A stretch of DNA of 64,000 nucleotides from Selaginella moellendorffii (Eukaryota; Plantae; Lycopodiophyta), in assembly GCF_000143415.4 (NCBI RefSeq), contig NW_003314349.1, forward strand, positions 750,214 through 814,213. Reading direction: 5' to 3'. Below, piece after piece: positions 24,014 through 54,231 of the stretch (its first letter is position 1; each line of letters starts with the position of its first letter). The notes beneath the pieces were generated by a model. The model was not told the origin of the DNA. It worked only from the letters and a program-made list of their open reading frames with translations, and made no database searches. Position numbers and translations under genes: made by a program.

Positions 24014-26071
24014 TTACTTGATCAGCGATAGCTCTCTCACTCTCGTTTGATCTCGCAGTTTGATCAGATGCTTTCTCCACGATCCAACACGAGCTGCTGA
24101 ATTAAGATCGGCATCATCAGTCGAACACATGTTCGCAAGCACAACGTAGAGCGATGGATCGCCAGGATGCAACTCAAGGACACACTGTGCGAGCCGAGCT
24201 CCCCTCTCGACGTCCTTGTGACTCTTGCACGACCCGAGCAAGCACGTCCAGTCCAAGATATTCGGAACAAACGGCATCGTAAAGACGAGCTCCTCCGCCT
24301 CGTGCAGGTACCCGGACCGTCCCAGAAGATCCAGAACGCAGAAGAAATGCTGCTTGGTGGTCTCGAGACCAAAGTCGAGCTTCATCGAAACAAAGCAGCA
24401 CCTTCCATCGTAAACTTTGCCGGCATGGCTGCAAGCGATGATGATCGACACGAAAGAAGATTCATCCGGCTGGTGGAGGGACTTTAAGCTGTCAAACACT
24501 TCTTTAGCGTCGTGGTAATCTCCCCTATGAGCATACGCATGAAGAAGAGTGCTCCACGAAACGATGTCAAGCTCAGGCATGATATTGAGAAGATTCCTAG
24601 CCATTTGGATATGCCCGTTCCTGGTATATGCTGCTAGCATGGCATTGCCGGACACCAAGTTTTGTTCCGGCAAGCTATCAAAAACTGACTTTGCTTCGTT
24701 GAGATGCCCGTCTTGGGCATATGCGAAAAGCATTATCGTTAACGCAACCATGTTTTGCTGCGGCATAGAGTTGAGTATAGTTTTTGTTTCTTCGAGGTGG
24801 CCGCATTGGGCATACGCTGCTAGCATGGAAGTCCACGAGAACAAATCCTTCTGTGGCATCTCCTCAAAGAGGCATTTAGCCGACTCGAGCTGGCCGGTTT
24901 GGCTCAACCCCGCGAGGACTGTGTTGAAAGAGGCTAAGTCCCTGTGAGGCATCGAGAGAAACATCTTCTTGGCGTTGATGGTGAGACCATTCAACACGTA
25001 GCACGACATCATCGCGTTCCAGACCTCGAGATTCTGCTGCGGCACTTGGTGAAACAGGATCTTGGCTGCGTCAACCCGGCCGTGTTGAGCAAAGCCAGTG
25101 AGCAGCGCCGTCCAGGAGAGAAGATTTCTCCGTGGCATTCCGTCGAACATCCGCTTTGCCTCGTCAAGATGCCCGTTTTGGGAATATGCGCTGAGCATCG
25201 CCGTCCACGAGACGAGATCCTGCTGTGGGATGCGACTGAACATCGCTTTTGCTTCATCAAGGCGACCATTCTGTCCGTACGCGGACAGCATCGCCGTCCA
25301 TGACAAAAGATCCTGGTACGGCATCTCTGTAAACATTCGTCTTGATTCCTCCAAATGCCCGTTCTGGGCATATGCTCCAAGCATCGCGGTCCACGACAAA
25401 AGATTCCTCTCAGGCATTTGATCAAAGTAGTACTTGGCTTTCTCAAGATCCCCCTTTTGAGCATATGCCGTTACTAAAGCCGTCCATGTGACAAGATTCC
25501 TCTGTGGCATTTGCTCAAAGACTTGCCTAACCTCGTTAAGATGCCCGCATTGAGCATATGCCGTGAGCATCGCGGACCAGGAGAGCATATTCACCTCTGG
25601 CATTGCGTTAAAGATTCCTCGCGCACCCTCGAGATGCCCGACCTGGGCATATGCCGTTAGCATCGCGTTCCAGGAGACTAGCTCCAAGAGTGGCATTCGA
25701 TCGAATAGCTCCCGCGCCTCATCGAGATGCCCGTTCTGGGCATAGGCGGACACCATCGCATTCCACGCCACCAGCGTTTGATCCGCCATTGCGTCAAAGA
25801 GCCGCTTGGCGTCGTCCAGGAGCCCATTCCTGGAGCACGCCAAGATCATCGCAATCCAGGAAAAGGAGTTCCTTCCGCCAGCGCCAAGCTCCTGAAAGAT
25901 CTGCCGGGCCTCCCTCACACCACCACATTTGCCATACATTTCGATGAGTTTATTATGGAGGAAGGGATCGGAGGAGGATGAGAAGAGTGGGCGCGTGCGG
26001 TCGTGAATCTCTCGTGCCCTAGATAGTGTTCTACATGAATCGATGAGCCTGAGGCATTCGTATCTATCCAT
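24014..26071 (-). CDS. PLS-class PPR protein with 14 tandem 31-aa SS-type motifs and an E domain, no DYW (RNA-editing factor)
   Basis: Intronless; repeats like NLLSWTAMLGAYAQNGHLEESRRMFTEMPYQ; ACSHAG, HFFCVLDLLGRSG, WTCLLGSC, YVVLAN. First ATG at 26071. Confidence 0.92.
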   Translation of the reverse strand: MDRYECLRLIDSCRTLSRAREIHDRTRPLFSSSSDPFLHNKLIEMYGKCGGVREARQIFQELGAGGRNSFSWIAMILACSRNGLLDDAKRLFDAMADQTLVAWNAMVSAYAQNGHLDEARELFDRMPLLELVSWNAMLTAYAQVGHLEGARGIFNAMPEVNMLSWSAMLTAYAQCGHLNEVRQVFEQMPQRNLVTWTALVTAYAQKGDLEKAKYYFDQMPERNLLSWTAMLGAYAQNGHLEESRRMFTEMPYQDLLSWTAMLSAYGQNGRLDEAKAMFSRIPQQDLVSWTAMLSAYSQNGHLDEAKRMFDGMPRRNLLSWTALLTGFAQHGRVDAAKILFHQVPQQNLEVWNAMMSCYVLNGLTINAKKMFLSMPHRDLASFNTVLAGLSQTGQLESAKCLFEEMPQKDLFSWTSMLAAYAQCGHLEETKTILNSMPQQNMVALTIMLFAYAQDGHLNEAKSVFDSLPEQNLVSGNAMLAAYTRNGHIQMARNLLNIMPELDIVSWSTLLHAYAHRGDYHDAKEVFDSLKSLHQPDESSFVSIIIACSHAGKVYDGRCCFVSMKLDFGLETTKQHFFCVLDLLGRSGYLHEAEELVFTMPFVPNILDWTCLLGSCKSHKDVERGARLAQCVLELHPGDPSLYVVLANMCSTDDADLNSAARVGSWRKHLIKLRDQTRVRELSLIK

Positions 26072-26912
26072 CAAACCATGTTTACTTCGCGCCAAACGTT
26101 CCAGACCGTTATATGATGATATGTGATTTTCTTCAAACTTATAGTAAGGAATTTGCAGCCAATTCCTAATAAAATTGATTGCTAAATTCGTTTAGACGCT
26201 AACGAAGAAGAGCTAATGTTATGGGGAAATGTGAGGCTGTTTGATTTGTTTTTTGTTTTGATTTTAGAGATTTTTATAAACAGAGATTAAAATTGTCTTA
26301 CTGAGGAATTGCCTTCTTGGAATACAAGGACCCTACCAAAGGATTAGTCTTGGTAGTGCCCCAACTTATTGAATTGGCTGCTTGTTATTTGGTGCTCCCT
26401 TTAATTGGTAAAAGTATGGGATTGAGCTATTTATGTTCAACATTGATCATCAAAGGAGATTAATTTTATAGGTCAATTTCAAGAAGATGTTAGAAATGGG
26501 TGTTCATAAAAAATCCCAATGTCCCTAAGCATATAATCTTATATATCATGTGTGTGGATGCTTTCAGAGGTGTGTCAATGCAAGAGAGTACATCATGAGT
26601 TATATATACAAGTGAAGAAAAAAATAAAGAAATTTAGCAAATTCAGTATGACTTCAATATTGGATTCAATAGTGTACTAAAGTTTATATAAAATATGGGA
26701 GATTAGGTCAATAAAAAGAAATTTATCATCTTCAAAAAAGTGTGAGACAATATTTTTTAAACCTCAACTTTTTATGTTTTTGAAATAACGAACTAAGCAA
26801 CAAAGTTAACAAACGTAAGCAAAATTTATTAGTTGAGAACCAAAGAATAACAATCAATATCATTTTCTAAATTTCCAAAAAATCTGCCATACAAGATTTA
26901 TTCTTACTCTAT

Positions 26913-37472: not shown

Positions 37473-40400
37473 TTGTTGGATTTGATTGATTGTCTCCTCG
37501 ATATTGCAGTGAGCGCTTCCAAAAATGCCAGGAGAAATCTTCCCAGCCTTCTCGCTGCGCTCAAGTCGTGCGCGAGCTCCGGGGATGTCAAGCGCGTCAA
37601 GAGCATCCACGCAGACGCCATGGAAAGAGGTGAAGTGTCCAGCGTTTATGCAGCCAGCGCTTTGGTTAACGCATACGCCAAGTGTGGGAGCATGGCCGAC
37701 GCTCACAGTGTCTTTGACAGGATGCCTTGCCACAACGCCATTGCTCTCACGTCATTGATGCTGGGCCACGCCGAGGATGGAAATGGAGAGCTCGCGCTGG
37801 AGCTTTTCTCTCGCATGGAAGACGCTGGGTGTCCACCGGATGCTCGGACTCTCGTAGCCGCTACCAAAGCTTGCGGCCGCCTGGCTCTCAGGGAGGAGTT
37901 CACACATGTTGAGGGCAGGTTTGTGAGGGTGGCTTCGCTGGAAAGAGGGATTTCTCTGCACGATCAAGCTGCGAGGCTTGGTTTCGACTCGGACAGGTTC
38001 CTGGCAAGCAGCATGATCGAGATGTATGCGAAGTGTGGAAGCATGGAGGATGCTAAGCAGGTGTTTGACAAGCTGGATTCCCACGACGACGTGATACTCT
38101 GGAACGCGCTGATGCTTGGATACGCAGAGAATGGGGAAGGGGAGCTGGCTATGGATCTGTTCGAGCTCATGCGGACTAAAGGCTGCTCGCCGAATGCTCG
38201 GACTGTCGTTGCCGGTTGCAAAGCCTGCGCGGACATGGGATTGAAAGAAGAAGGAAAAGTGGTGCTGGATGGCAAGCTTGTGAGCTTGGAGTCCCTGGAG
38301 AAGAGTCTGGCTCTACATTCAGAGGCTGCAAAACGCGGATACGACTCGGACATTTTTGTGTCGAGCACTGTCATCGACATGTACGCGAAGTGTGGAAGCA
38401 TGCGAGACTCGCGTCTCGTCTTCGACAGGATGGTTGGTCACAACGTCGTGGCTTGGAACTCTTTGATCCTCGGCTATGCGGAAAACGGGGAACCCGAGCT
38501 TTCTTTGGAACTGTTTCGACACATGAGACCTCGAGGCTGTCTTCCCGACGCGTGCAGCTTCGTGGCTGCCACAAAGGCGTGCTCTTATTTGGCAGTAGCA
38601 GAAGAAGGCAAGCAGGTTGACGGAATGGTGGTGAAACTGGAGTCTTTAGAGAAGGGGATGGGAATTCACTTGAAAGCTGCGCAATCTGGCTACGATTTGG
38701 AGATAGTCGTCACCAACACTTTGCTGGATATGTACGCAAAGTGTGGGAGCCTGGTTGATTCTCGAAGAATTTTCGACAGGATGTGTTTTCACAGCGTTGT
38801 GTCCTGGAACGCGCTGTTGCTGGGATATGTCGAGAACAGGAAAGCAGAGCTCGCCTTGGAGATGTTTGAATGGATCAGTGAGGACGGCTGCCAACCAAAT
38901 GCCTCAACTTTGGTCGCTGCTCTGAAAGCTTGTACCACCTTTGCAGCCGACGAAGAAAAGAAGGAAATCCACGGACTGGTCGTCAAGTTACAGGCTTTAG
39001 AGAAGGGACTGGCCATTCACTCGCAGGCAGCAGAGATCGGTTGTGTCTCGGAGGCTTTCGTGGCGACCACACTCGTCGACATGTATGCCAAATGTGGGAG
39101 TTTGCTCGATTCCCGCAAAGTTTTCGACACGATCCGGGAGCACAGTGTGGTCTCGTGGAACGCGTTGATGCTTGGATACGCAGAAAACAGCGAGGGTGAT
39201 ACGGCTTTGGAGTTACTAGCGGAAATACTAGCAGCAAAGGTCTGTGCTCCAAACTCTTCGACATTTGTTGGAGCTCTCAAAGCGTGTGTTGATCTTGCAG
39301 CTAAAGAGGAGGGGACTGACGTGGAGGGGAAGCTTGTCAAGCTGGAATCTCTTGAGAAGGCTATGGAAGTCCATTTGCAAGCTGCGGGACACGGTTTTGA
39401 GAATGGAATTCTCTTCGCCAATGCTCTACTAGATACGTTCTCAAGGTGTGGAAGTTTGATGGACGCCCGGATAGTCTTTGACAAGATGCCACAGCGCAGT
39501 GTGGTATCATGGACTGCCTTGGTCATGGCATATGTCGACTGCGGAGAACCGAAGCTCGCTCTGGAAGTTTTCTCGTGCATGGAACCGGAGGGACTTCTAC
39601 CAAATGCGTACAGTTTTGCCGCTGCCATCAGGGCCTGCAGTGTATTGGGAGCAACAGAGGAAGCCAAGGAAGTGGAAGGCAGGATGGTGAAGGCTGAGTC
39701 GCTGGGAACAGGCGCAGCTTTGCACTCTCAAGCATTCAAGAGTGGCTACGACATGGACGTCAGTGTGGCGAACGCACTGGTGGACATGTACGTGAAGTGT
39801 GGGAGTTTGGCCGACGCTCGGAAAGTTTTTGATGGGATGACGCCTCAGGATCCCGTCTCTTGGAACGCTTTGATCCTGGGATATGTCACAAACGGGGAAG
39901 CAGAAGTGGCCTTGAGTATCTTCGAGACGAACAGCAGCTGCGTTCCAACCTCTCGAACGTTTTGTGCGGCACTCAAAGCTTGCAGCAGTCTAGCAGGGAA
40001 GACAGATGGGGATGGAAGGCTCGTGAAAGTAGAGGAGGCACTCGAGAAAGCCGTGGGGATTCACGCTCGGGCGGCCAGCTTTGAATTCGACTCGGACACT
40101 TTTCTAGCCAGCGCGCTCGTCAGCTTCTACGCCAAGTGTGGAAGTATCCGGGACGCCTGGAAAGTGTTCCAAAAGGTGCGCCTTCACGACGCGGTGTCCT
40201 GGACTGTGATGATACTCGGGCTCGCCGAAAGTGGTCAGGGGGAGCTTTCTCTGCAACTCTTCCATCGAATGCGAGCACAGGGATACAAAACCGACGCGCC
40301 AACTTTTGTGGCTGCTCTCAAAGCTAGCAGCAGCGTGGGAGCCTTGGAGCCTCTGAAGGGAATTCACGCAGATATCTCCAGGTGTGGACTCGAGGACGAT

Positions 40401-41018
40401 CCCGTTGTAGCGAACGGCGTTGTTGATGGCTATGGCAAAGCCGGGGACGCAGCGAAGGCACAGCAGGTCTTCGAGGCACTGGAGAAACCAGACGCGGTTG
40501 CCTGGACGTCCGTGATAGCAGCACACAGCCGCGACGGGGACACGCGAATGGTTTTCAAGCTCTTCGACGAGATGCAAGACGAAGGCTTGCAACCAGATGG
40601 GATCGCACTTCTTTGCGTGCTCACGGCGTGCAGCCATGCCGGGCTTGTCCACCACGCGAAGCGCTACTTCAAGGAGATGGAAGCGAAGTATGGAGTTCGT
40701 CCCGGGGCCGAGCATTACCACTGCATGGTGGACGCTCTCGGCCGTGCAAACGAGCTGGAGGAAGCGGTGGAGATGGTGGAAGCCATGCCTTGCGAGGCGA
40801 GTGGTGTTGCTTGGAGAACGGTGCTGGGCGCTTGCAAGAAGTGGAAGCATGCGGCGGTCGGGAGGCTTGCTTTCGATCGGCTGGTTGAAGTGGAGGCGAG
40901 GGACGAGGCGGGGTATTTGTTGATGGAGGCGATCTACGCGAGCAGTGGCATGAGGGAGGAGCAAGCTCAAGTCCAGGAGTTGAGAAGGAAGAACATACCA
41001 AAGAATATCCAGGTATAG
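37473..41018 (+). CDS. Large PLS-class PPR-E protein (~1180 aa) with extended L motifs; possible short upstream exons from ~37238
   Basis: Repeated MYAKCGS...VF / VSWNALMLGY triplets; ACSHAGLV, HYHCMVDALGRA, WRTVLGAC, YLLMEAIY; no DYW. Confidence 0.92.
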   Translation: MLDLIDCLLDIAVSASKNARRNLPSLLAALKSCASSGDVKRVKSIHADAMERGEVSSVYAASALVNAYAKCGSMADAHSVFDRMPCHNAIALTSLMLGHAEDGNGELALELFSRMEDAGCPPDARTLVAATKACGRLALREEFTHVEGRFVRVASLERGISLHDQAARLGFDSDRFLASSMIEMYAKCGSMEDAKQVFDKLDSHDDVILWNALMLGYAENGEGELAMDLFELMRTKGCSPNARTVVAGCKACADMGLKEEGKVVLDGKLVSLESLEKSLALHSEAAKRGYDSDIFVSSTVIDMYAKCGSMRDSRLVFDRMVGHNVVAWNSLILGYAENGEPELSLELFRHMRPRGCLPDACSFVAATKACSYLAVAEEGKQVDGMVVKLESLEKGMGIHLKAAQSGYDLEIVVTNTLLDMYAKCGSLVDSRRIFDRMCFHSVVSWNALLLGYVENRKAELALEMFEWISEDGCQPNASTLVAALKACTTFAADEEKKEIHGLVVKLQALEKGLAIHSQAAEIGCVSEAFVATTLVDMYAKCGSLLDSRKVFDTIREHSVVSWNALMLGYAENSEGDTALELLAEILAAKVCAPNSSTFVGALKACVDLAAKEEGTDVEGKLVKLESLEKAMEVHLQAAGHGFENGILFANALLDTFSRCGSLMDARIVFDKMPQRSVVSWTALVMAYVDCGEPKLALEVFSCMEPEGLLPNAYSFAAAIRACSVLGATEEAKEVEGRMVKAESLGTGAALHSQAFKSGYDMDVSVANALVDMYVKCGSLADARKVFDGMTPQDPVSWNALILGYVTNGEAEVALSIFETNSSCVPTSRTFCAALKACSSLAGKTDGDGRLVKVEEALEKAVGIHARAASFEFDSDTFLASALVSFYAKCGSIRDAWKVFQKVRLHDAVSWTVMILGLAESGQGELSLQLFHRMRAQGYKTDAPTFVAALKASSSVGALEPLKGIHADISRCGLEDDPVVANGVVDGYGKAGDAAKAQQVFEALEKPDAVAWTSVIAAHSRDGDTRMVFKLFDEMQDEGLQPDGIALLCVLTACSHAGLVHHAKRYFKEMEAKYGVRPGAEHYHCMVDALGRANELEEAVEMVEAMPCEASGVAWRTVLGACKKWKHAAVGRLAFDRLVEVEARDEAGYLLMEAIYASSGMREEQAQVQELRRKNIPKNIQV

Positions 41019-41039
41019 ATAGAGCAAAAAATTTAAGGT

Positions 41040-41107
41040 TGGGGATGCCAGGAGTCGAACCCGGGAATTCTTTTCAGGCTTGAAAATTTGGAAACCACTA
41101 CACCCCC
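41040..41107 (-). ncRNA. 68-nt non-canonical tRNA-like unit with Pol III-type flanks (copy 1)
   Basis: GGGGGTG/CATCCCC-A acceptor stem; CCGGG-TTCGACT-CCTGG T-arm (B box); TTTTCA-AGCC-TGAAAA stem; TATATAAG ~31 nt upstream of a CAA; T6 run at 41026-41031. Confidence 0.6.
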
Positions 41108-41439
41108 TTTAAGAGCTTGTGAAAGACAAGCGCTTTAGATTTCTTATATATGGCAAATATTAAAGAGAAAAATAAGAGGCCGCGAGAAATTTTAAAAAGA
41201 TGCCAGAATTATGCTATTTTGACACGTGGTCGTCTTCTATTTGCTGTTGGGAGAGGCTGTGAAGGTTTAAGCTCGGGAAGAAGAGCCCCTTGCTTGCTAG
41301 GTTATCGCATTCTCTGTATGCGCTCTTCGCCTCCAACAGCTAGGGCGTCGAAATCCATCACATTTGTGCGCGTCCGGGCCTCGCGCTCTTATAATCCGGC
41401 TTCCGGCCGCCAGCAGGTACTGTGATCGCGCTCGATCGA

Positions 41440-42120
41440 TCCTTTCTCCGATGTCAAGCATTTCTAATCTTTCTACGGTTCTATGTTATAATCCCTTTGC
41501 CGGCAGCGCTGTAGTGGATCTGTTCCACAGAACGATGAGCCACGACTAGCCGCGCAACCTCTCGAGGAGTTTCCTGTACAATGCAAATTTCTTTCCTAGG
41601 ACTTATCTCGAAATCTGGCAATATTCTTTCACGCAGGGAAATGAGAGCCCAGCGCTCGAGCAACCGGTATGCTTTGACTCGATCTTCTTTTTAAAAGTCG
41701 TTAAAAGTTTCTTGTGCTAAATTCCAGGCCCCGCGAGCTCACGGCAAATTGGTACAAGCGTTGTTCTTGCCAAAAATGAGTCCGAGCGATATGTGTTTTG
41801 TAGCAAGGATTGGCGAGTATATGTTGCTGGGCCTTATCATCTCTGGTAGCCCTCTGTGCTTCTGCGTGCTCTCGACAGTCCAAGGAAAAGGTTCGTTCAC
41901 AGCTTTAGCTTACTTTGCTGATAGAAAGTTTTCTAATGCAGAATCTCCAAGACGACCAAGCTCACCAAGCTGACATTGATGACGACGACGCACTTGAATT
42001 GGTATGCTATTTTCCTAGTCCGGATCTTTAAGCTTTGAAATCGTGCTCAGGACATGCAGCCTCTCCGAGGGCTACCCTACATCGTGTCATGGTCGTTTAT
42101 CCAGAAACTGGTCAACAGCA
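41440..42120 (+). pseudogene. Truncated copy of the micro-exon PARP-like gene (first exon deleted, 3' end replaced by AT-rich repeat)
   Basis: Near-identical to 45460-46250 but lacks ~86 bp containing the MEPGSGG exon. Confidence 0.65.
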
Positions 42121-42436
42121 TGTTTAAGTTGAAAGTGTATAATTTATAAATACAAGATTAATCTTACCACATATCAACCATTACATGGTATAAAGTAAAA
42201 GTTTATAAACTACAAATATAAAATTAATCTAAATGAATAACAACTACTAGATTGTAAAATATTCTAGAATATCCAAGCATATTAAAATATATTTACTCTC
42301 TTAAAAATTTGCTTAAGCAAACAAAAAATTCAAAAGCAATTAGTTTAACTTTTTACCCTAAACCCTAAACTTCCATTTTCTTGGTTGTCATACTCTAAAC
42401 TTCAAACCCAAGACTAAGTGTAAACCCAAGGTTAAG

Positions 42437-43173
42437 TGTAAGCTTTTGAATTTGAACTTCCAAAGAGGCCACCAACTCAATACTATTCAAACTTAAAAAT
42501 ATTTAACCCCAAATATCTTAAGACCCTTAATCGATTGAAAAAAAAGGTGCACTTTTATTTATAAACTTTTTCCTTCTATATTTAAACTCCTATGAATTGT
42601 CTTTTAAATTATTCTTTTTGGTTGCTTATAATTTACCACCCTTCCTTACAAATTCATGCCCTCGTGAATTGAAGTTAAAAACTATAGCTTTCTCGAGAGC
42701 CCTACTCTCTTAACACTCTACCCCTCGAGTCGAGCCCAGCTAAACCTATTAAATATGAATTAACATGTGGTGTGATTCCTTTATTGAACCAATAAAGTCA
42801 AATTCAAGACTGCTCTAATATAAAATGTTAACTTTTGAATTTGGACTTCTCAAGAAGCCACCTAACTCAATACTATTCAAATCCAAAGACATTAAACCTC
42901 AATTTAGTACTATTCAAACCCAAGAACATTTAACCCCAACCCAATACTATTTAAACCCCCCAAGAACATTTAACCCCAACCCAATACTATTTAAACCCAA
43001 CAACATTTAACCCTAACCTAGTACTATTCAAACCTAAAGACGTTTAACCTTAAGTATCCCAAAACCCTTAATTGATTAAAAAAAGGGGTGTACTTTTATT
43101 CATGGATCTTTTCGGCCTTTAAGAAAAAACCTTTATAAACTTTTTGTTGAGTTGTTCTTTTTGGTTACTTACA
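42437..43173 (-). mobile_element. Decayed Cassandra-type TRIM with tandem amplification of part of the 5S domain
   Basis: TGTAAGC...TTACA termini; decayed TSD TTAAG/TTAAA; alignable to 3142-3734; ~38-bp unit repeated at ~42868-43050. Confidence 0.85.
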
Positions 43174-43569: not shown

Positions 43570-44582
43570 CCTAATTAATCAAATAGAAGTTTATAAATAT
43601 AAACATAAGATTAAATGATTAGATGGTAAAATAAACTAGAATATACTAGGAAGTGTTTAGGAAAGTTTATACAATATAAAAAAGTTTAAAAATAATTAAT
43701 AAAAATTAATATAAAAATAATAAAATGTTTATAAATTATAAATAATGAATAACAACCATTGGATGGTAGAATATCCTTAAATATCTAAGAATATTCTAAG
43801 TATTTCCACCCCTACAGGTTAACCATTAATCACTAAAATTAATTATTATTATAACTATTGAAGATTAGCTTTATATAAGAATTTTCCTAAGCTGGAATTA
43901 TAATGACAAAACACATGGGAATCTTCACATAGTGCTTAAACATCCTTTTATGTTTAATATTAAATATGGTAACAACATTTTAAAAACACCAACGATTCCT
44001 CTTCGTGCTGGGCTCTTCATCAAAACTGCCATCTTGCTCGTTACTAGGTTTGTACACAAGATCAAAACACACAGCCCTACAAATAAAGCATAAAAAAAAC
44101 TAATAATAAGAGCTTTAAAAAAACTTGGACTCTTACCCATATAAACATTGATGAACCTTTGGCACAAGCACCACCATCCTTTCAGATTTTTTGACTTTGG
44201 AAATCAAGTTACCCAATGCTTGATCGGTCATAAAGCCCAGAAAAGGCACACAATTAACCTCCCACAACTAGAAAATAAATACCTTCATTCATCCATTGCT
44301 TTATTGTCCATATTTTTTTCTCAAAGTTTTCTTCTCAATTGGCTTGCTGTCCTTTATAAACATTTTTGTTACTGTACATTATATTGAGCTTTATAAAGAT
44401 TTTTTATACCTGTGTTTGCTCTCAATAAGTAAAAAGAAGTCCTACAGCTTGTTCTCAGCATCCACCAGCTGGAGATGGATGATGCTATTAGGTCTGTGGT
44501 TGCCAAACACCAACCCAATAAAACTGCTGACTGTTGTCTCTTAGGAAGGCCTGAAATACATCTGCTGTATGTATCTGATGAG
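43570..44582 (-). pseudogene. Duplicated 3' fragment of the Crinkler-like gene (diverged copy of ~50960-51978)
   Basis: Shares IHTADVFQAFLRDNSQQFYWVGV and the downstream non-coding sequence. Confidence 0.8.
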
Positions 44583-44583
44583 T

Positions 44584-45075
44584 AGCACACAGCCGCGACG
44601 GGGACACGCGAATGGTTTTCAAGCTCTTCGACGAGATGCAAGATGAAGGCCTGCAACCAGACGGGATCGCACTTCTTTGCGTGCTCACGGCGTGCAGCCA
44701 TGCGGGGCTTGTCCACCAAGCAAAGCGCTACTTCAAGGAGATGGAAGCGAGTATGGAGTTCGTCCCGGGGCCGAGCACTACCACTGCATGGTGGACGCTC
44801 TCGGCCGCGCAAACGAGCTGGAGGAAGCGGTGGAGATGGTGGAAGCCAGGCCTTGCGAGGCGAGTGGTGTTGCTTGGAGAACGGTGCTGGGCGCTTGCAA
44901 GAAGTGGAAGAATGCGGCGGTCGGGAGGCTTGCTTTCGATCGGCTGGTTGAAGTGGAGGCGAGGGACGAGGCGGGGTATTTGTTGATGGAGGCGATCTAC
45001 GCGAGCAGTGGCATGAGGGAGGAGCAAGCTCAAGTCCAGGAGTTGAGAAGGAAGAACATACCAAAGAATATCCAG
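44584..45075 (+). pseudogene. Duplicated 3' fragment of the 37.5-41 kb PPR gene, with a 1-bp frameshift
   Basis: Near-identical to 40520-41018; GAAGCGAAGTAT has become GAAGCGAGTAT. Confidence 0.9.
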
Positions 45076-45092
45076 AGCAAAAACTTTAAGGT

Positions 45093-45160
45093 TGGGGATG
45101 CCAGGAGTCGAACCCGGGAATTCTTTTCAGGCTTGAAAATTTGGAAACCACTACACCCCC
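45093..45160 (-). ncRNA. 68-nt tRNA-like unit (copy 2)
   Basis: Identical to 41040-41107; TATA and T-run retained despite flank substitutions. Confidence 0.6.
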
Positions 45161-45547
45161 TTTAAGAGCTTGTGAAAGACAAACGCTTTCGGTTTTTTAT
45201 ATATGGCAAATATTAAAGAGAAAAATAAGAGACCGCGAGAAATTTTAAAAAGATGCCAGAATTATGCTATTTTGACACGTGGTCGTCTTCTATTTGCTGT
45301 TGGGAGAGGCTTTAAGCTCGTAGAGGGAAGAAGAGCCCCTTGCTTGCTAGGTTATCGCATTCTCTGTATGCGCTCTTCGCCTCCAACAGCTAGGGCGTCG
45401 AAATCCATCACCTTTGGCTCGCGCTCTTATAATCCGGCTTCCGGCCGCCAGCAGGTACTGTGATCGCGCTCGATCGATCCTTTCTCCGATGTCAAGCATT
45501 TCTAATCTTTCTGCTGCTGGTGCCAATGCAAAGATTTCGAGCGTGCG

Positions 45548-47847
45548 ATGGAGCCTGGCAGTGGAGGAGACGAAGAAATTCTAGAAATCTCGGCAATGGT
45601 ACGGTTCTATGTTATAATCCCTTTGCCGGCAGCGCTGTAGTGGATCTGTTCCACAGAACGATGAGCCACGACTAGCCGCGCAACCTCTCGAGGAGTTTCC
45701 TGTACAATGCAAATTTCTTTCCTAGGACTTATCTCGAAATCTGGCAATATTCTTTCACGCAGGGAAATGAGAGCCCAGCGCTCGAGCAACCGGTATGCTT
45801 TGACTCGATCTTCTTTTTAAAAGTCGTTAAAAGTTTCTTGTGCTAAATTCCAGGCCCCGCGAGCTCACAGCAAATTGGTACAAGCGTTGTTCTTGCCAAA
45901 AATGAGTCCGAGCGATATGTGTTTTGTAGCAAGGATTGGCGAGTCTATGTTGCTGGGCCTTATCATCTCTGGTAGCCCTCTGTGCTTCTGCGTGCTCTCG
46001 ACAGTCCAAGGAAAAGGTTCGTTCACAGCTTTAGCTTACTTTGCTGATAGAAAGTTTTCTAATGCAGAATCTCCAAGACGACCAAGCTCACCAAGCTGAC
46101 ATTGATGACGACGACGCACTTGAATTGGTATGCTATTTTCCTAGTCCGGATCTTTAAGCTTTGAAATCGTGCTCAGGACATGCAGCCTCTCCGAGGGCTA
46201 CCCTACATCGTGTCATGGTCGTTTATCCAGAAACTGGTCAACAGCACGTTTAAGTTGAAAGTGTATAATTTATAAATACAAGATTAATCTTACCACATAT
46301 CAATCGTTAGATGGTATAAAGTAAAAGTTTATAAACTACAAATATAAAATTAATCTAAATGAATAACAACTACTAGATGGTAAAATATTCCAGAATATCC
46401 AAGCATATTAAAATATATTTACTCTCTTAAAAATTTGCTTAAGCAAACAAAAAATTTCAAAAGCAATTAGTTTAACTTTTTACCCTAAACCCTAAACTTC
46501 CATTTTCTTGGTTGTCATACTCTAAACTTCAAACCCAAGACTAAGTGTAAACCCAAGATTAAGTGTAAGTTTTTGAATTTGAACTTCCAAATTCAAACTT
46601 AAAAATATTTAACCCCAAATATCTTAAGACCCTTAATCAATTGAAAAAAAAAAAGTGCACTCTTATTTATAAACTTTTTCCCTCTATATTTAAACTTCTA
46701 TGAATTGTCTTTTAAATTATTCTTTTTGGTTGCTTATAATCTACCACCCTTCCTTACAAATTCATGCCCTCATGAATTGAAGTTAAAAACTGTAGCTTTC
46801 TTGAAAGCCCTACTCTCTTAACACTCTACCCCTTGGGTCGAGCCCAACTAAACCTATTAAATATGAATTAACATGTGAGAACCCAGTGCTCGAGCAACCG
46901 GTATACTTTCAAAGATTTGACTCGATCTTCTCTTTAAGAGTCGTTAAAAGTTCCTTCTACAGAATTCCAGGCCCCGCGAGCTCACGACAAATTGGTACAA
47001 GCGTTGTTCTTGCAAAAAAATGAGTCCGAGCGATATGTGTTTTGTAGCAAGGATTGGCGAGTCTATGTTGCTGGGCGTTATCATCTCTGGTAACCTTGTG
47101 TGCTTCTGCGTGCTCTCGACAGTCCAAGGAAAAGGTTCGTTCACAGCTTTAGCTTACTTTGCTGATAGAAAGTTTTCTAATGCAGAATCTCCAAGACAAC
47201 CAAGCTGACATTGAGGATGACGACGACGCACTTGAATTGGTATGCTATTTTGCTAGTCCGGATCTTTGCCTGCATTTAAGCTTTGAAATCGTGCTCAGGA
47301 TATGCAGCCTCTCTGCATCGTGTCATGTTCGTTCATCCAGAAACTGGTCAACAGCACGGAGTGCACCGATGTGCCCATCTCGCTCAAGCGGAATCATTTC
47401 CTCACGGTGCAGAATCGCGGGACATACGCTCCCTACACCCGGTTTGCGGAAGCATATGAATGGTTGCGAATGTATCGTCCCGATCTCGGTAAGAGCTCAC
47501 TGTTTCTTATGGAATTCTTTTCAGCTTGAGCATGATCACCAGGTAACATCAGTGACGAATTCGAACCAGCTGACGACCCAGCGGTGTGGAAGTTCCTGTG
47601 GCACGGCACCGAAACGAGGAACGTTGCTTCGATCATGGCGAACGGAATGCAGTCAACGCCCAGTTATGCGAGGCTCCACGCTAGCAATGACTCCAAGGAC
47701 CACACGCTTGTGCTGTGTGCTACACTCTTCGCGCATAAGGTGGACGATGATCGTTTCACGGTGGACAGCGAGCGCCCATATCTCGTTCTTCCGCTAGCGG
47801 AGTGGCATCTTCGCCGCCAAGAGCTCCTGCCCTGCCAAATGTGCTAG
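45548..47847 (+). CDS. Micro-exon gene with a C-terminal PARP/ADP-ribosyltransferase-like domain (internally duplicated; intactness uncertain)
   Basis: GT-AG micro-exons lead to ...RFAEAYEWL...WKFLWHGTETRNVASIMANG...HTLVLCATL...RFTV...YLVLPLAEW, which resembles the PARP catalytic LWHG(S/T)xxxNxxxIxxxG motif. Confidence 0.55.
46564..46877 (-). mobile_element. Truncated decayed Cassandra copy (duplicate of 42437-42768)
   Basis: Colinear with the 42.4-kb copy; cut at the duplication breakpoint. Confidence 0.8.
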
Positions 47848-50596: not shown

Positions 50597-51689
50597 CCAA
50601 ACACCATCACCTTTAGCACTTTATATCTCAAGTGGCTATATTTCATCTCAATAGGGTGCATTATTCCATGAGACTAACATATTCTTCGCTCGCATTTAAA
50701 GCTCTAGGTGTTCCATTCCATTCTTTAGTGTCCTATTTCCTTTTCTCTTCCCATTCACCACACGTGAACATGGTACCCTAACCCTAAGTTTGGCAAGTTT
50801 TTGGCTAATATAAATTAACTACAGGTGATTTTGTTTAATCAATCACATAAATATGTCAGATTTGGATTGTGCTATGGATATTGTTCAGTTGTCAATTACG
50901 TTTTGCATGCAGCAACACTTAGTTTTCTTAATAGTAGTGTTATTCTTATTTATTAATCCAATTAATCAAATGGAAGTTTATAATTATAAACATATTTATA
51001 ATTTACACAAGATTAATGTTATCAAATATCAATGATTAGATGGTAGAACAAACTAGAATATACTAGGAAGTGTTTAGGAAAGTTTATAAATTAAAAAATG
51101 TTTATAAATTATAAATATAAGATTAATCTAAATTGGATGGTAGAATATCTTTGAATATCCTTAAATATTTTAACTTTTCTTGAGAAAACTAATAATTACT
51201 GGAACTAATTATTATTATAGCGATAAAAAAAATTTAAGCTGGAATTATAATTACAAAACACAAGAGTAGTGTTTAACAATGTCAAAACATCCTTTTATGT
51301 TTAATATTATTGGTAAACGAGTAAATATGGAAACAGCATTTTAAAAACACCAACGACTCCTCTTAGTGCTGGGCTCTTCATCAAAACTGTCATCTTGCTC
51401 ATTACTAGGTTTGTACATGAGATCAAAACACACAGCACCTAATAAACCTACAAATAAAACATAAAATACTAATAATAAAAGCATTAAAATAACTTACCAA
51501 ATGGACTTTGCATTGGATACCCATATAAACATTGATGAACCTTTGGCACAAGCACCACCATCCTTTCAGATTTTTTGACTTTGGAAATCAAGTTACCCAA
51601 TGCTCGGTCATAAAGACCATGGCGTAATTCTCACCTGAAAAGACACACAATTAACCTCCCACAACTAGAAAATAAATACCTTCATTCAT

Positions 51690-54231
51690 CCATTGCTTTA
51701 TTGTCCATATTTTTTTCTCAAAGTTTTCTTCCCAATTGGCTTGCTGCCCTTCATAAACATCCCTATTACAGTACATTATAGTGAGCTTTATAAAGATTTT
51801 TTATACCTGTGTTTGCTCTCAATAAATAAAAAGAAGTCCTGCAGCATGTCCTCAGCATCCACCAGCTGTAGATGGATGAAGCTATCAGGTCCGTGGTTGC
51901 CAACACCAACCCAATAAAACTGCTGACTGTTGTCTCTTAGGAAGGCCTGAAATACATCTGCTGTATGTATCTGATGAGGCTGATGTGTCAGATGTCCAAA
52001 CTTTGCACCAGCTGGCAGCTGGAACTTCAAAGCTTGCATAGTTGCAGGAATGCAGAAATTGGAGGGAAGAATTTCTTCAAGTCTAAACTCAAATACTATT
52101 CCCTTCCCCTCACAATCATGAAAAAGCCACAACATATAGATCATCAACACAATGGACATCAGATCAGATACCTCCTTGTTTTTGGGATTAGAGATTAGTT
52201 TAGGTAGACACAAATCCTGGAGCTCTGCCACATGTAGGTTCTCGACGAGATGGTAAATGAGGAGTGGAGAGAACATGATGGAGAAAGCAGCATCTTCATC
52301 TCTTGATAATTTAATCTTCTCGTTAGATGGCAGCTCCTGTAATTGACAACCATAAGTTCTGACATAAACTCTGAAATATCAAAATAGTACCTCGTTGTGT
52401 AAGAGTCCAACTAAACCGCAAGACTCTAAAGACCCCCAGTTATCTTTATATCTGCTACCTGGCCAGACTAGTTCTTCCCGACGGATCAGGGTCCCCAGCA
52501 GCGCAACATAAAAAGCTCGTAACACCAACAAATACTTCTCGTCCTTAAGGTACTGATAATAAAAACCACGTTTGATATTACCCCAGGCAGTCGTTATTGT
52601 GTTACGGAGATCGATTTGAGTGAGATCTTGATTCACCTGTAACAAACATAGAAATTTTCTCGTCACATCAAGATAAAAGACAAGGAAACCTTTTCATAGA
52701 ACTTCGAAGCATCCAAATAAAGGTGGTCAGGCATCAACCCTCTCAAAAGGTGATCAAGCATGCGAGGATTCCCTCCTGATAACTTTATCAGGTTCCTTAG
52801 TCCGTCCTTGAGCTCAAATGGTTTCTCCATGTCCAGAGTATTTCCTAGTCTTGTAAGGAAGATTTTTGTAACTCTGACCACCTCGTGCTCTTTCAAAGGC
52901 CTGATAGGTATAAAAATACTTAGAGCCTTCTCCGTTGATGTGTAGCGCATTGTGGCCCCGGCAAATTCGGTCGTTGCTGCTGTAAGTATAGGAAACGTCA
53001 GGCCACCTCGGTTATCTTTGATATGTTGAACGTAGGCCGAGAAAGCATCATGAATCCAGGACAATGCGGGTGGGCAGCCGGGCTCAGGTTGGGCCTTGTT
53101 GACGTCATCAAAAAACCAAGATAGGAAAATTCGCTTATCCGCAGGAATCTTAAGACCAGTTCGAATGAAGTCGATCACATTTCCCAAAGTCAGCACATTC
53201 CTCAGGCCTGGAAATTTGTCATCCAACTGCCTGAGAAAGCGGCCATAACTAGTAGTGTTCATTGGACAAAGAGCTGCATGAAAGCACCGAAGGGCCAAAA
53301 CCTGTTCTGGTGCCAGGCCGTCCTCCAGGAAAGTTACATCCCCTGCCCTCGTAGTTTCAACCGAATGATACATTGTAAGATCTTTGCCGGTCTCCAACAC
53401 GTTGTTCACCATTTCTTTGAACTGCTTCACAAACCCTTTGTGGCCTAGCTGATCCTCTAGAAGGCCATCTATATCCCCTGTTTTTGTGTCCCTCTCCCAC
53501 GCTTCTCTGAGAAGAGCTGAGAGGCATGTCCCGACAGTTGTTTTACCTGCGCCAGGAAATCCGATGAGCATCAACAAGAAATCTTTTCGTTCAATATCCG
53601 AGGTATTGGCCGTCGTGTTCATGAAAGTTCCAAACACCCGTGCAGCGGCTGCCATGAGATGCTGAATCGTCTCCTCCCTTCCGACCAAAGTAAAATAATC
53701 TCCCAAATCCGTACGTAAACACGGCTGCCCACCGTTGTCCAGAAGAGGCAACTTGCAGGTTGGCACCCTCGTCTCAGGCATCCGGTGAAAACACCTTGCG
53801 CGCTGCAGTTTTTCTCCGTATACATCCAGCAACTTCGACACTACTACAACACAAACCGATCCAAAACGAACTAGCAAGCCAGACAGTCGCCAGACAGACA
53901 AGAGCAAGTGCTTACCTGCCGCAGTTTGAAGTGCCATCGCCAGGGTCGCTGAAACAGAAATATGAACTTGTCAAGCCACAAAACAGCCAGACAATCCTAG
54001 AGGAGGCAAAAGCAGCCAGCCCACAAAGGTCAACCACTTACTCTTAATATCCCACGGCTTTACATCCTGCAACTGCTCCTCTTCGTTTCGCAGGCGCTTC
54101 TTTTCCTCCCGCAGCTGCTTCTTTTCCTCCCACAGCCGCTTCCTCTTCTCGGTATCTTTTTCCTTTTCGATTTGTTTCTGGACTGCTTCGATTTTCTCCT
54201 CGACGCTCGCAATCGCCATGCCGGATGCCAT
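51690..54231 (-). pseudogene. Crinkler/RHS-type gene: coiled-coil header, P-loop NTPase and PD-(D/E)xK nuclease; premature TGA at 52379-52381
   Basis: Header VEEKIEAVQKQIEKE...LREEKKRLRNEEEQL; LVGREE; Walker A GFPGAGKTT; Walker B WFFDD; SGGNPRML; GPDSF...FIESKH. ORFs 52379-52666 and 51788-52276 are in frame across a TGA. Confidence 0.72.

Follow-up and report, generated by a model that had tools for sequence, protein, structure and literature searches.

We identified in Selaginella moellendorffii a 68-nt tRNA-like element that is probably a derivative or relic of a nuclear tRNA-Ala gene, non-decoding and possibly still transcribed. The element appears to have kept the 5' acceptor strand of tRNA-Ala, a paired acceptor stem, the T arm with its B box and flanks like those of a tRNA gene, and it has lost decoding, with six D-arm bases missing and the anticodon arm replaced. 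As such, it likely belongs among the loci catalogued in plants as 'tRNA-like / tRNA pseudogene', a kind already known. The element is present twice only through the local copying of a ~2.3-kb block of DNA. Both copies lie in the window, by which we mean the whole 64-kb stretch that was analyzed, an ordinary gene-rich nuclear region that carries UTP20, a germin-like cupin gene and a further PPR gene.

The 68-nt string was recovered on the minus strand exactly as first quoted, and its second copy matched it with 0 mismatches, where shuffled sequences would be expected to give none (Table 1). The minimum-energy fold of the minus strand comprises the acceptor stem, a 3-bp mini D hairpin (UGG/CCA), a 6-bp hairpin with the loop AGCC and the T arm. 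The acceptor stem pairs element positions 1-7 with 61-67 through six Watson-Crick pairs and one G.U pair (G5.U68, counted as in a tRNA), and the discriminator A at element position 68 remains unpaired. The T arm (positions 44-60) has a 5-bp stem that includes one G.U pair and a UUCGACU loop. Thus, the element has the 7-bp acceptor stem, the discriminator, the 5-bp T stem and the T-loop consensus UUCRANY of a tRNA. It does not have the rest of the canonical cloverleaf (a 5-bp anticodon stem, a 7-nt loop with U33 and a purine at 37, and a D arm of 14-18 nt). The 5' strand of the acceptor stem is 36 nt away from the T stem, a distance too short to fit a D arm, an anticodon arm and a variable loop, as these need at least 38. 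The earlier note on this DNA had described the same string, acceptor stem with discriminator A, T arm and B box, collapsed D region and 6-bp/4-nt hairpin, all of which we found again. Further, the minus strand folds at -21.1 kcal/mol compared to -14.5 for the complementary strand, which forms no cloverleaf, showing that it is the minus strand that is structured. Its fold energy does not stand out (z = -0.92), which is normal for tRNAs.

Table 1. Positions in the window of the tRNA-like element, its structural parts, the flanking signals and the surrounding features.
Feature	Position	Strand	Basis or remark
68-nt element, probably tRNA-Ala-derived, copy 1	41040..41107	-	exact string, fold, 5' match to tRNA-Ala(CGC)
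Element copy 2, identical	45093..45160	-	within duplicated block B
Copy 1 acceptor stem	41107-41101 with 41047-41041	-	discriminator at 41040
Copy 1 mini D hairpin	41097-41089	-	minimum-energy fold
Copy 1 6-bp/4-nt hairpin	41086-41071	-	minimum-energy fold
Copy 1 T arm	41064-41048	-	minimum-energy fold
B box GGTTCGACTCC, exact	41051..41061	-	pattern scan; copy 2: 45104-45114
TATA TATATAAG at -43..-36	41143..41150	-	copy 2: TATATAAA at 45196-45203
CAA at -12..-10, possible Pol III start region	41117..41119	-	CAA base rate 26%
T6 run, 8 nt past the discriminator	41026..41031	-	copy 2: T5 at 45079-45083
Intact PLS/E-type PPR gene P0001, 1098 aa	37722..41018	+	predicted 3' UTR antisense to the element
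Duplicated block A: PPR 3' end, element and 1.7 kb non-coding	40513..42769		alignment
Duplicated block B: PPR 3' fragment only (44585-45075), element and 1.7 kb non-coding	44576..46877		alignment

The first 10 nt of the element (GGGGGUGUAG) are identical to the start of plant tRNA-Ala(CGC) in the sequence given by PMC4887504. In the tRNA these nucleotides are followed by CUCAUAUGGU (PMC4887504), whereas the element goes on directly with UGGU, leaving a 6-nt gap. The likeness to tRNA-Ala was seen in the first 10 nt and in UGGU only, the comparison being with the printed 5' part of tRNA-Ala(CGC), and within these bounds the element resembles a tRNA-Ala gene that has lost 6 nt from its D arm. Descent from a normal tRNA gene by one simple deletion, which the earlier note had weighed against its own reading, accounts for the D arm (6 nt) and leaves the middle unexplained, where an unrelated, A/U-rich 6-bp/4-nt hairpin replaces the anticodon arm. 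Position 3:70 is a G:C pair, and the only G.U pair of the acceptor stem is that at 5:68. The G3:U70 wobble pair is an established identity determinant for AlaRS. Given the G3:C70 pair in its place, no alanylation of the element would be expected.

Signals for transcription by Pol III were found both inside and around the element. In both copies the B box is an exact match to the type-2 internal consensus (GGTTCGANNCC), and the upstream TATA and CAA motifs and the T6 run lie where the earlier note had placed them. TATA, CAA and T5 occur jointly at 0.02-0.04% of the positions in the window and at 0.2% in its AT-rich spacer, a coincidence rare enough to make the flanks look like those of a real tRNA gene. 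That these flanking signals are kept in both copies is a counterpoint to the reading of the element as a relic. The internal A box, which has the consensus TRGCY...YGG (PMC10886601) and covers tRNA positions 8-19, is truncated by the loss of the six D-arm bases, so that TAG is followed directly by TGG. In plant tRNA genes the upstream TATA is reported at -35 to -20 and CAA at -10 to -3, and the coordinated enrichment of these motifs is reportedly angiosperm-specific (PMC13437025); the motifs of the element fall slightly outside both windows. Hence, of the plant Pol III signature proposed earlier, the TATA, CAA, exact B box and oligo-T are present, whereas the A box is incomplete and the spacing of the flanking motifs departs from the usual. 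A precedent is the GUT15 tRNA-like gene of Arabidopsis, in whose A box two bases are altered and which cannot drive its own transcription by Pol III (PMC6152437). With this precedent, the truncated A box, and off-window motifs belonging to an angiosperm-specific signature, autonomous transcription of the element is plausible, not assured.

Should the B box and the upstream TATA still support transcription by Pol III, the product would be an acceptor/T-arm minihelix cut by RNase P and RNase Z. By the established substrate rules, as with mascRNA and the t-elements, the trimmed RNA would then be CCA-tailed, and it would be neither alanylated nor used in translation. We consider it most likely that the element has no dedicated function. 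A transcript, if made, would be antisense to the 3' UTR of the neighboring PPR gene, most likely by an accident of position only.

The stop codon of this PPR gene (P0001) is at 41016-41018, 21 nt from the element, in good agreement with the ~22 nt reported before. The nearest named relatives of P0001 are S. moellendorffii proteins, and its 90% cluster includes two RefSeq entries from this species. A 97% identical copy of the gene region 37473-41018 (+), P0121 (XP_024539821.1), is found on another scaffold and probably represents the other haplotype. Elsewhere on the same 814-kb scaffold lies P0122 (XP_024517982.1), a C-terminal copy of 408 aa with 95% identity. By its sequences, the PPR family of P0001 is one that is recently duplicating. 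Another PPR gene of the PLS type that carries an E motif (24014-26095, minus strand) is not followed by a tRNA-like element.

In the main rival to a tRNA-Ala relic, the element would be a non-decoding tRNA mimic that is being maintained and belongs to a Selaginella family of Pol III RNAs with a tRNA-Ala body; its transcript would be trimmed by RNase P/Z and CCA-tailed. As part of this joint reading, which we regard as unlikely though deserving of serious weight, the RNA might serve as a decoy for the machineries of tRNA handling or organelle import, as a source of small fragments, or as an antisense partner of the PPR 3' UTR. Its best argument is the contrast between a flawless acceptor stem and T arm and a wholly remodeled, still-paired middle. 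Uniform neutral decay would not produce such a pattern, which requires that one event replaced the middle or that the ends were under selection. Good folding in the minus strand only, owing to the G.U pairs, and the rarity by chance of the TATA, CAA and T-run combination also speak for a mimic, and the tRNA-like RNA of GUT15 in plants and mascRNA in animals provide precedents. However, when the central 36 nt were shuffled, a perfect 6-bp hairpin arose in 5% of cases, and the 'stems that stay paired' on which the earlier note had relied are therefore marginal evidence. The ordinary fold z-score, the A box truncated in a manner that recalls the transcriptionally inactive GUT15 box, and the lost G3:U70 pair weigh against a mimic as well. 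What stands of the 'processed, non-decoding tRNA mimic' proposed earlier is an element that is tRNA-derived, non-decoding and structured in the minus strand, with its B box and flanks kept; the preference for a mimic over a decayed tRNA found no support, the paired hairpin being only marginally unusual.

The second copy had been the only comparative argument for a mimic, and its flanks had been thought to differ from those of the first. We found instead that the flanks are shared, both copies being parts of one ~2.26-kb local duplication with about 92-96% identity. The alignment of the two blocks has 60 mutational events in 2349 columns, and its blastn pieces are 94.7-96.4% identical. Among all 68-column windows of this alignment, 29% are without any difference, and identical runs extend up to 301 nt; that the two element copies do not differ is thus uninformative about selection. 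The second copy arose by segmental duplication and carries no signal of constraint, and the comparative argument fails with it, leaving the mimic reading with no independent copy in the window. Scans of the 64-kb window for further or decayed copies (B-box, 5'-half, blastn-short and nhmmer) found none, and the sole match in a metagenome pattern scan was to an unrelated prokaryotic tRNA-His. What had seemed special about the locus, an independent identical copy, is an artefact of local duplication, and taken alone the locus matters little: it would be one more plant tRNA-like locus of a kind that catalogues have already set aside.

Several other repeats surround the duplicated blocks. A ~0.95-kb repeat (43614-44582 and 51031-51978, 80-100% identical) ends exactly at the start of block B, and the junction carries a TGAT(G)AG microhomology and looks like that of a pasted fragment. 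Directly behind block B, at 46916-47356, is a third copy of 41673-42120 with 88.7% identity. The AT-rich spacer between blocks A and B (GC ~29%) contains a tandem array of 37-40-nt units at 42861-43049. Closer to the element, the hexamer CTTAAA adjoins it upstream (41108-41113) and recurs 2 nt downstream on the minus strand (41032-41037), as a target-site duplication or by chance.

Some of this architecture could point to a mobile element, with the tRNA-like sequence as the cargo or head of a tRNA-derived SINE or TRIM, or as a fragment captured and spread by transposition together with a scrap of PPR gene, an origin that we consider improbable. Block B does resemble a pasted fragment that abuts another repeat via short microhomology, the CTTAAA direct repeat flanks the element, and the genome of S. 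moellendorffii has a tRNA-bearing TRIM, Helenus-1_SMo. In this TRIM, an internal part of 85 bp lies between two 120-bp LTRs that carry the tRNA-like sequence, and the target-site duplications measure 5 bp. Helenus-1_SMo and tRNA-derived SINEs resemble the element in their tRNA origin and conserved B box and have spread through the S. moellendorffii genome, yet the element has neither a pair of 120-bp LTRs nor a primer-binding site, and it also lacks the body and tail of a SINE. Identity with Helenus-1_SMo was rejected after a by-eye comparison with the published supplement, as the LTR is unrelated in sequence and no such repeat pair surrounds the element. A T-run terminator at +9 and a count of no more than two copies in 64 kb, which share a single duplication, also argue against a mobile element, as do the PPR part of block A, which is the native end of an intact gene (that of block B being a 3' fragment with the E motif only), and the window's ORFs of at least 150 aa, which include no transposase, Helitron or LINE. 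For a SINE, the alternative that the earlier note had raised itself, the missing body and tail, the terminator at +9 and the two copies in 64 kb are unfavorable signs, and the 6-nt CTTAAA repeat is a favorable one.

Standard detectors did not recognize the element. ARAGORN with default settings called no tRNA and no tmRNA in the whole window, and neither the mitochondrial and intron modes nor the tmRNA mode (-m), the latter even at a 70% threshold, returned anything; Rfam gave no match at gathering scores. At a 60% threshold ARAGORN forced a tRNA-Ala(AGC), which we rejected as mis-registered (shifted and mismatched acceptor stem, A33/C37). In the E-value mode of Rfam, the two ends of the tmRNA model (RF00023) aligned to the element at 31.9 bits, short of the gathering score of 47, and the remaining matches were noise; the alignment deletes 303 model positions and covers the tRNA-Ala-like ends only. 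The ARAGORN and Rfam runs suggested earlier thus yielded no call at normal thresholds, and the tmRNA ends and the forced tRNA-Ala(AGC) below them. A reduced tmRNA-like tRNA domain for the rescue of organelle ribosomes (cf. mitochondrial tmRNAs without a message part) is barely conceivable: the acceptor stem with its alanine-tRNA-like end, the reduced D region with a UGG.UUC D-loop analogue, the single helix and the T arm resemble the tRNA-like domain of tmRNA, and Selaginella organelles import nuclear tRNAs (PMC11573648), but tmRNA membership was rejected on the sub-threshold score drawn from the ends, the G3:C70 pair in place of the G3:U70 needed for alanylation and the missing message domain with its tag reading frame, and a link between SmpB and Selaginella was not found in the literature. 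Both this role and a mobile-element origin are less likely than a maintained mimic.

Several known kinds of tRNA-like loci resemble the element in part. The 'tRNA-like' group of PlantRNA 2.0 contains both true pseudogenes and divergent molecules whose function is unknown. Like its members, the element is nuclear, derives from a tRNA and does not qualify as a canonical one; it differs in having diverged so far that neither ARAGORN nor Rfam picks it up at normal thresholds. mascRNA and the t-elements of plant mitochondria are processed, CCA-tailed and uncharged (PMC11658184). In mascRNA, which is cut by RNase P/Z and not aminoacylated (PMC11658184), the acceptor stem and T arm are likewise kept and the D stem and anticodon region diverged. 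However, mascRNA is cut from a Pol II lncRNA and has no sequence relation to the element, which is apparently a stand-alone Pol III gene known from its sequence. The t-elements, which are modified as well as processed (PMC11658184), are also tRNA-homologous structures beside mRNA ends, but they are organellar and on the same strand as the mRNA that they delimit, whereas the element is nuclear and antisense to the PPR mRNA. A further plant parallel is the tRNA-like RNA of Arabidopsis GUT15, which is stable and CCA-tailed (PMC6152437). It too is nuclear, with a T loop that is conserved and an A box that is altered, and it lacks a canonical anticodon stem-loop. In contrast to the element, which is intergenic and has a collapsed D arm, it has a D arm of normal size, is intronic and depends on Pol II, its own boxes being insufficient.

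At the level of a family, Selaginella might keep a dispersed set of tRNA-Ala minihelix RNAs, 66-68 nt long and lacking an anticodon, that are transcribed by Pol III, with acceptor and T arms under selection and a middle free to vary; this locus would be one member, without G3:U70. We think this rather doubtful. If true, the RNAs of the family could act outside translation, as substrates or decoys for the machinery that processes tRNAs, adds CCA or imports them into organelles. All mitochondrial tRNAs of Selaginella are imported, as are most of those in its plastids. Non-decoding, tRNA-shaped RNAs from one expressed and conserved family would then be a new player in tRNA processing and import in this plant.

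One further stretch of the window resembles the middle of the element. The 19 nt at 47511-47529 (minus strand) are element positions 25-44 minus one base, a score reached in 3 of 400 shuffles. The stretch may match by chance, be left over from a further copy, or have served as a template for filler DNA. The stretch lies 33 nt downstream of a B-box-like GGTTCGAATTC (47511-47567, minus strand).
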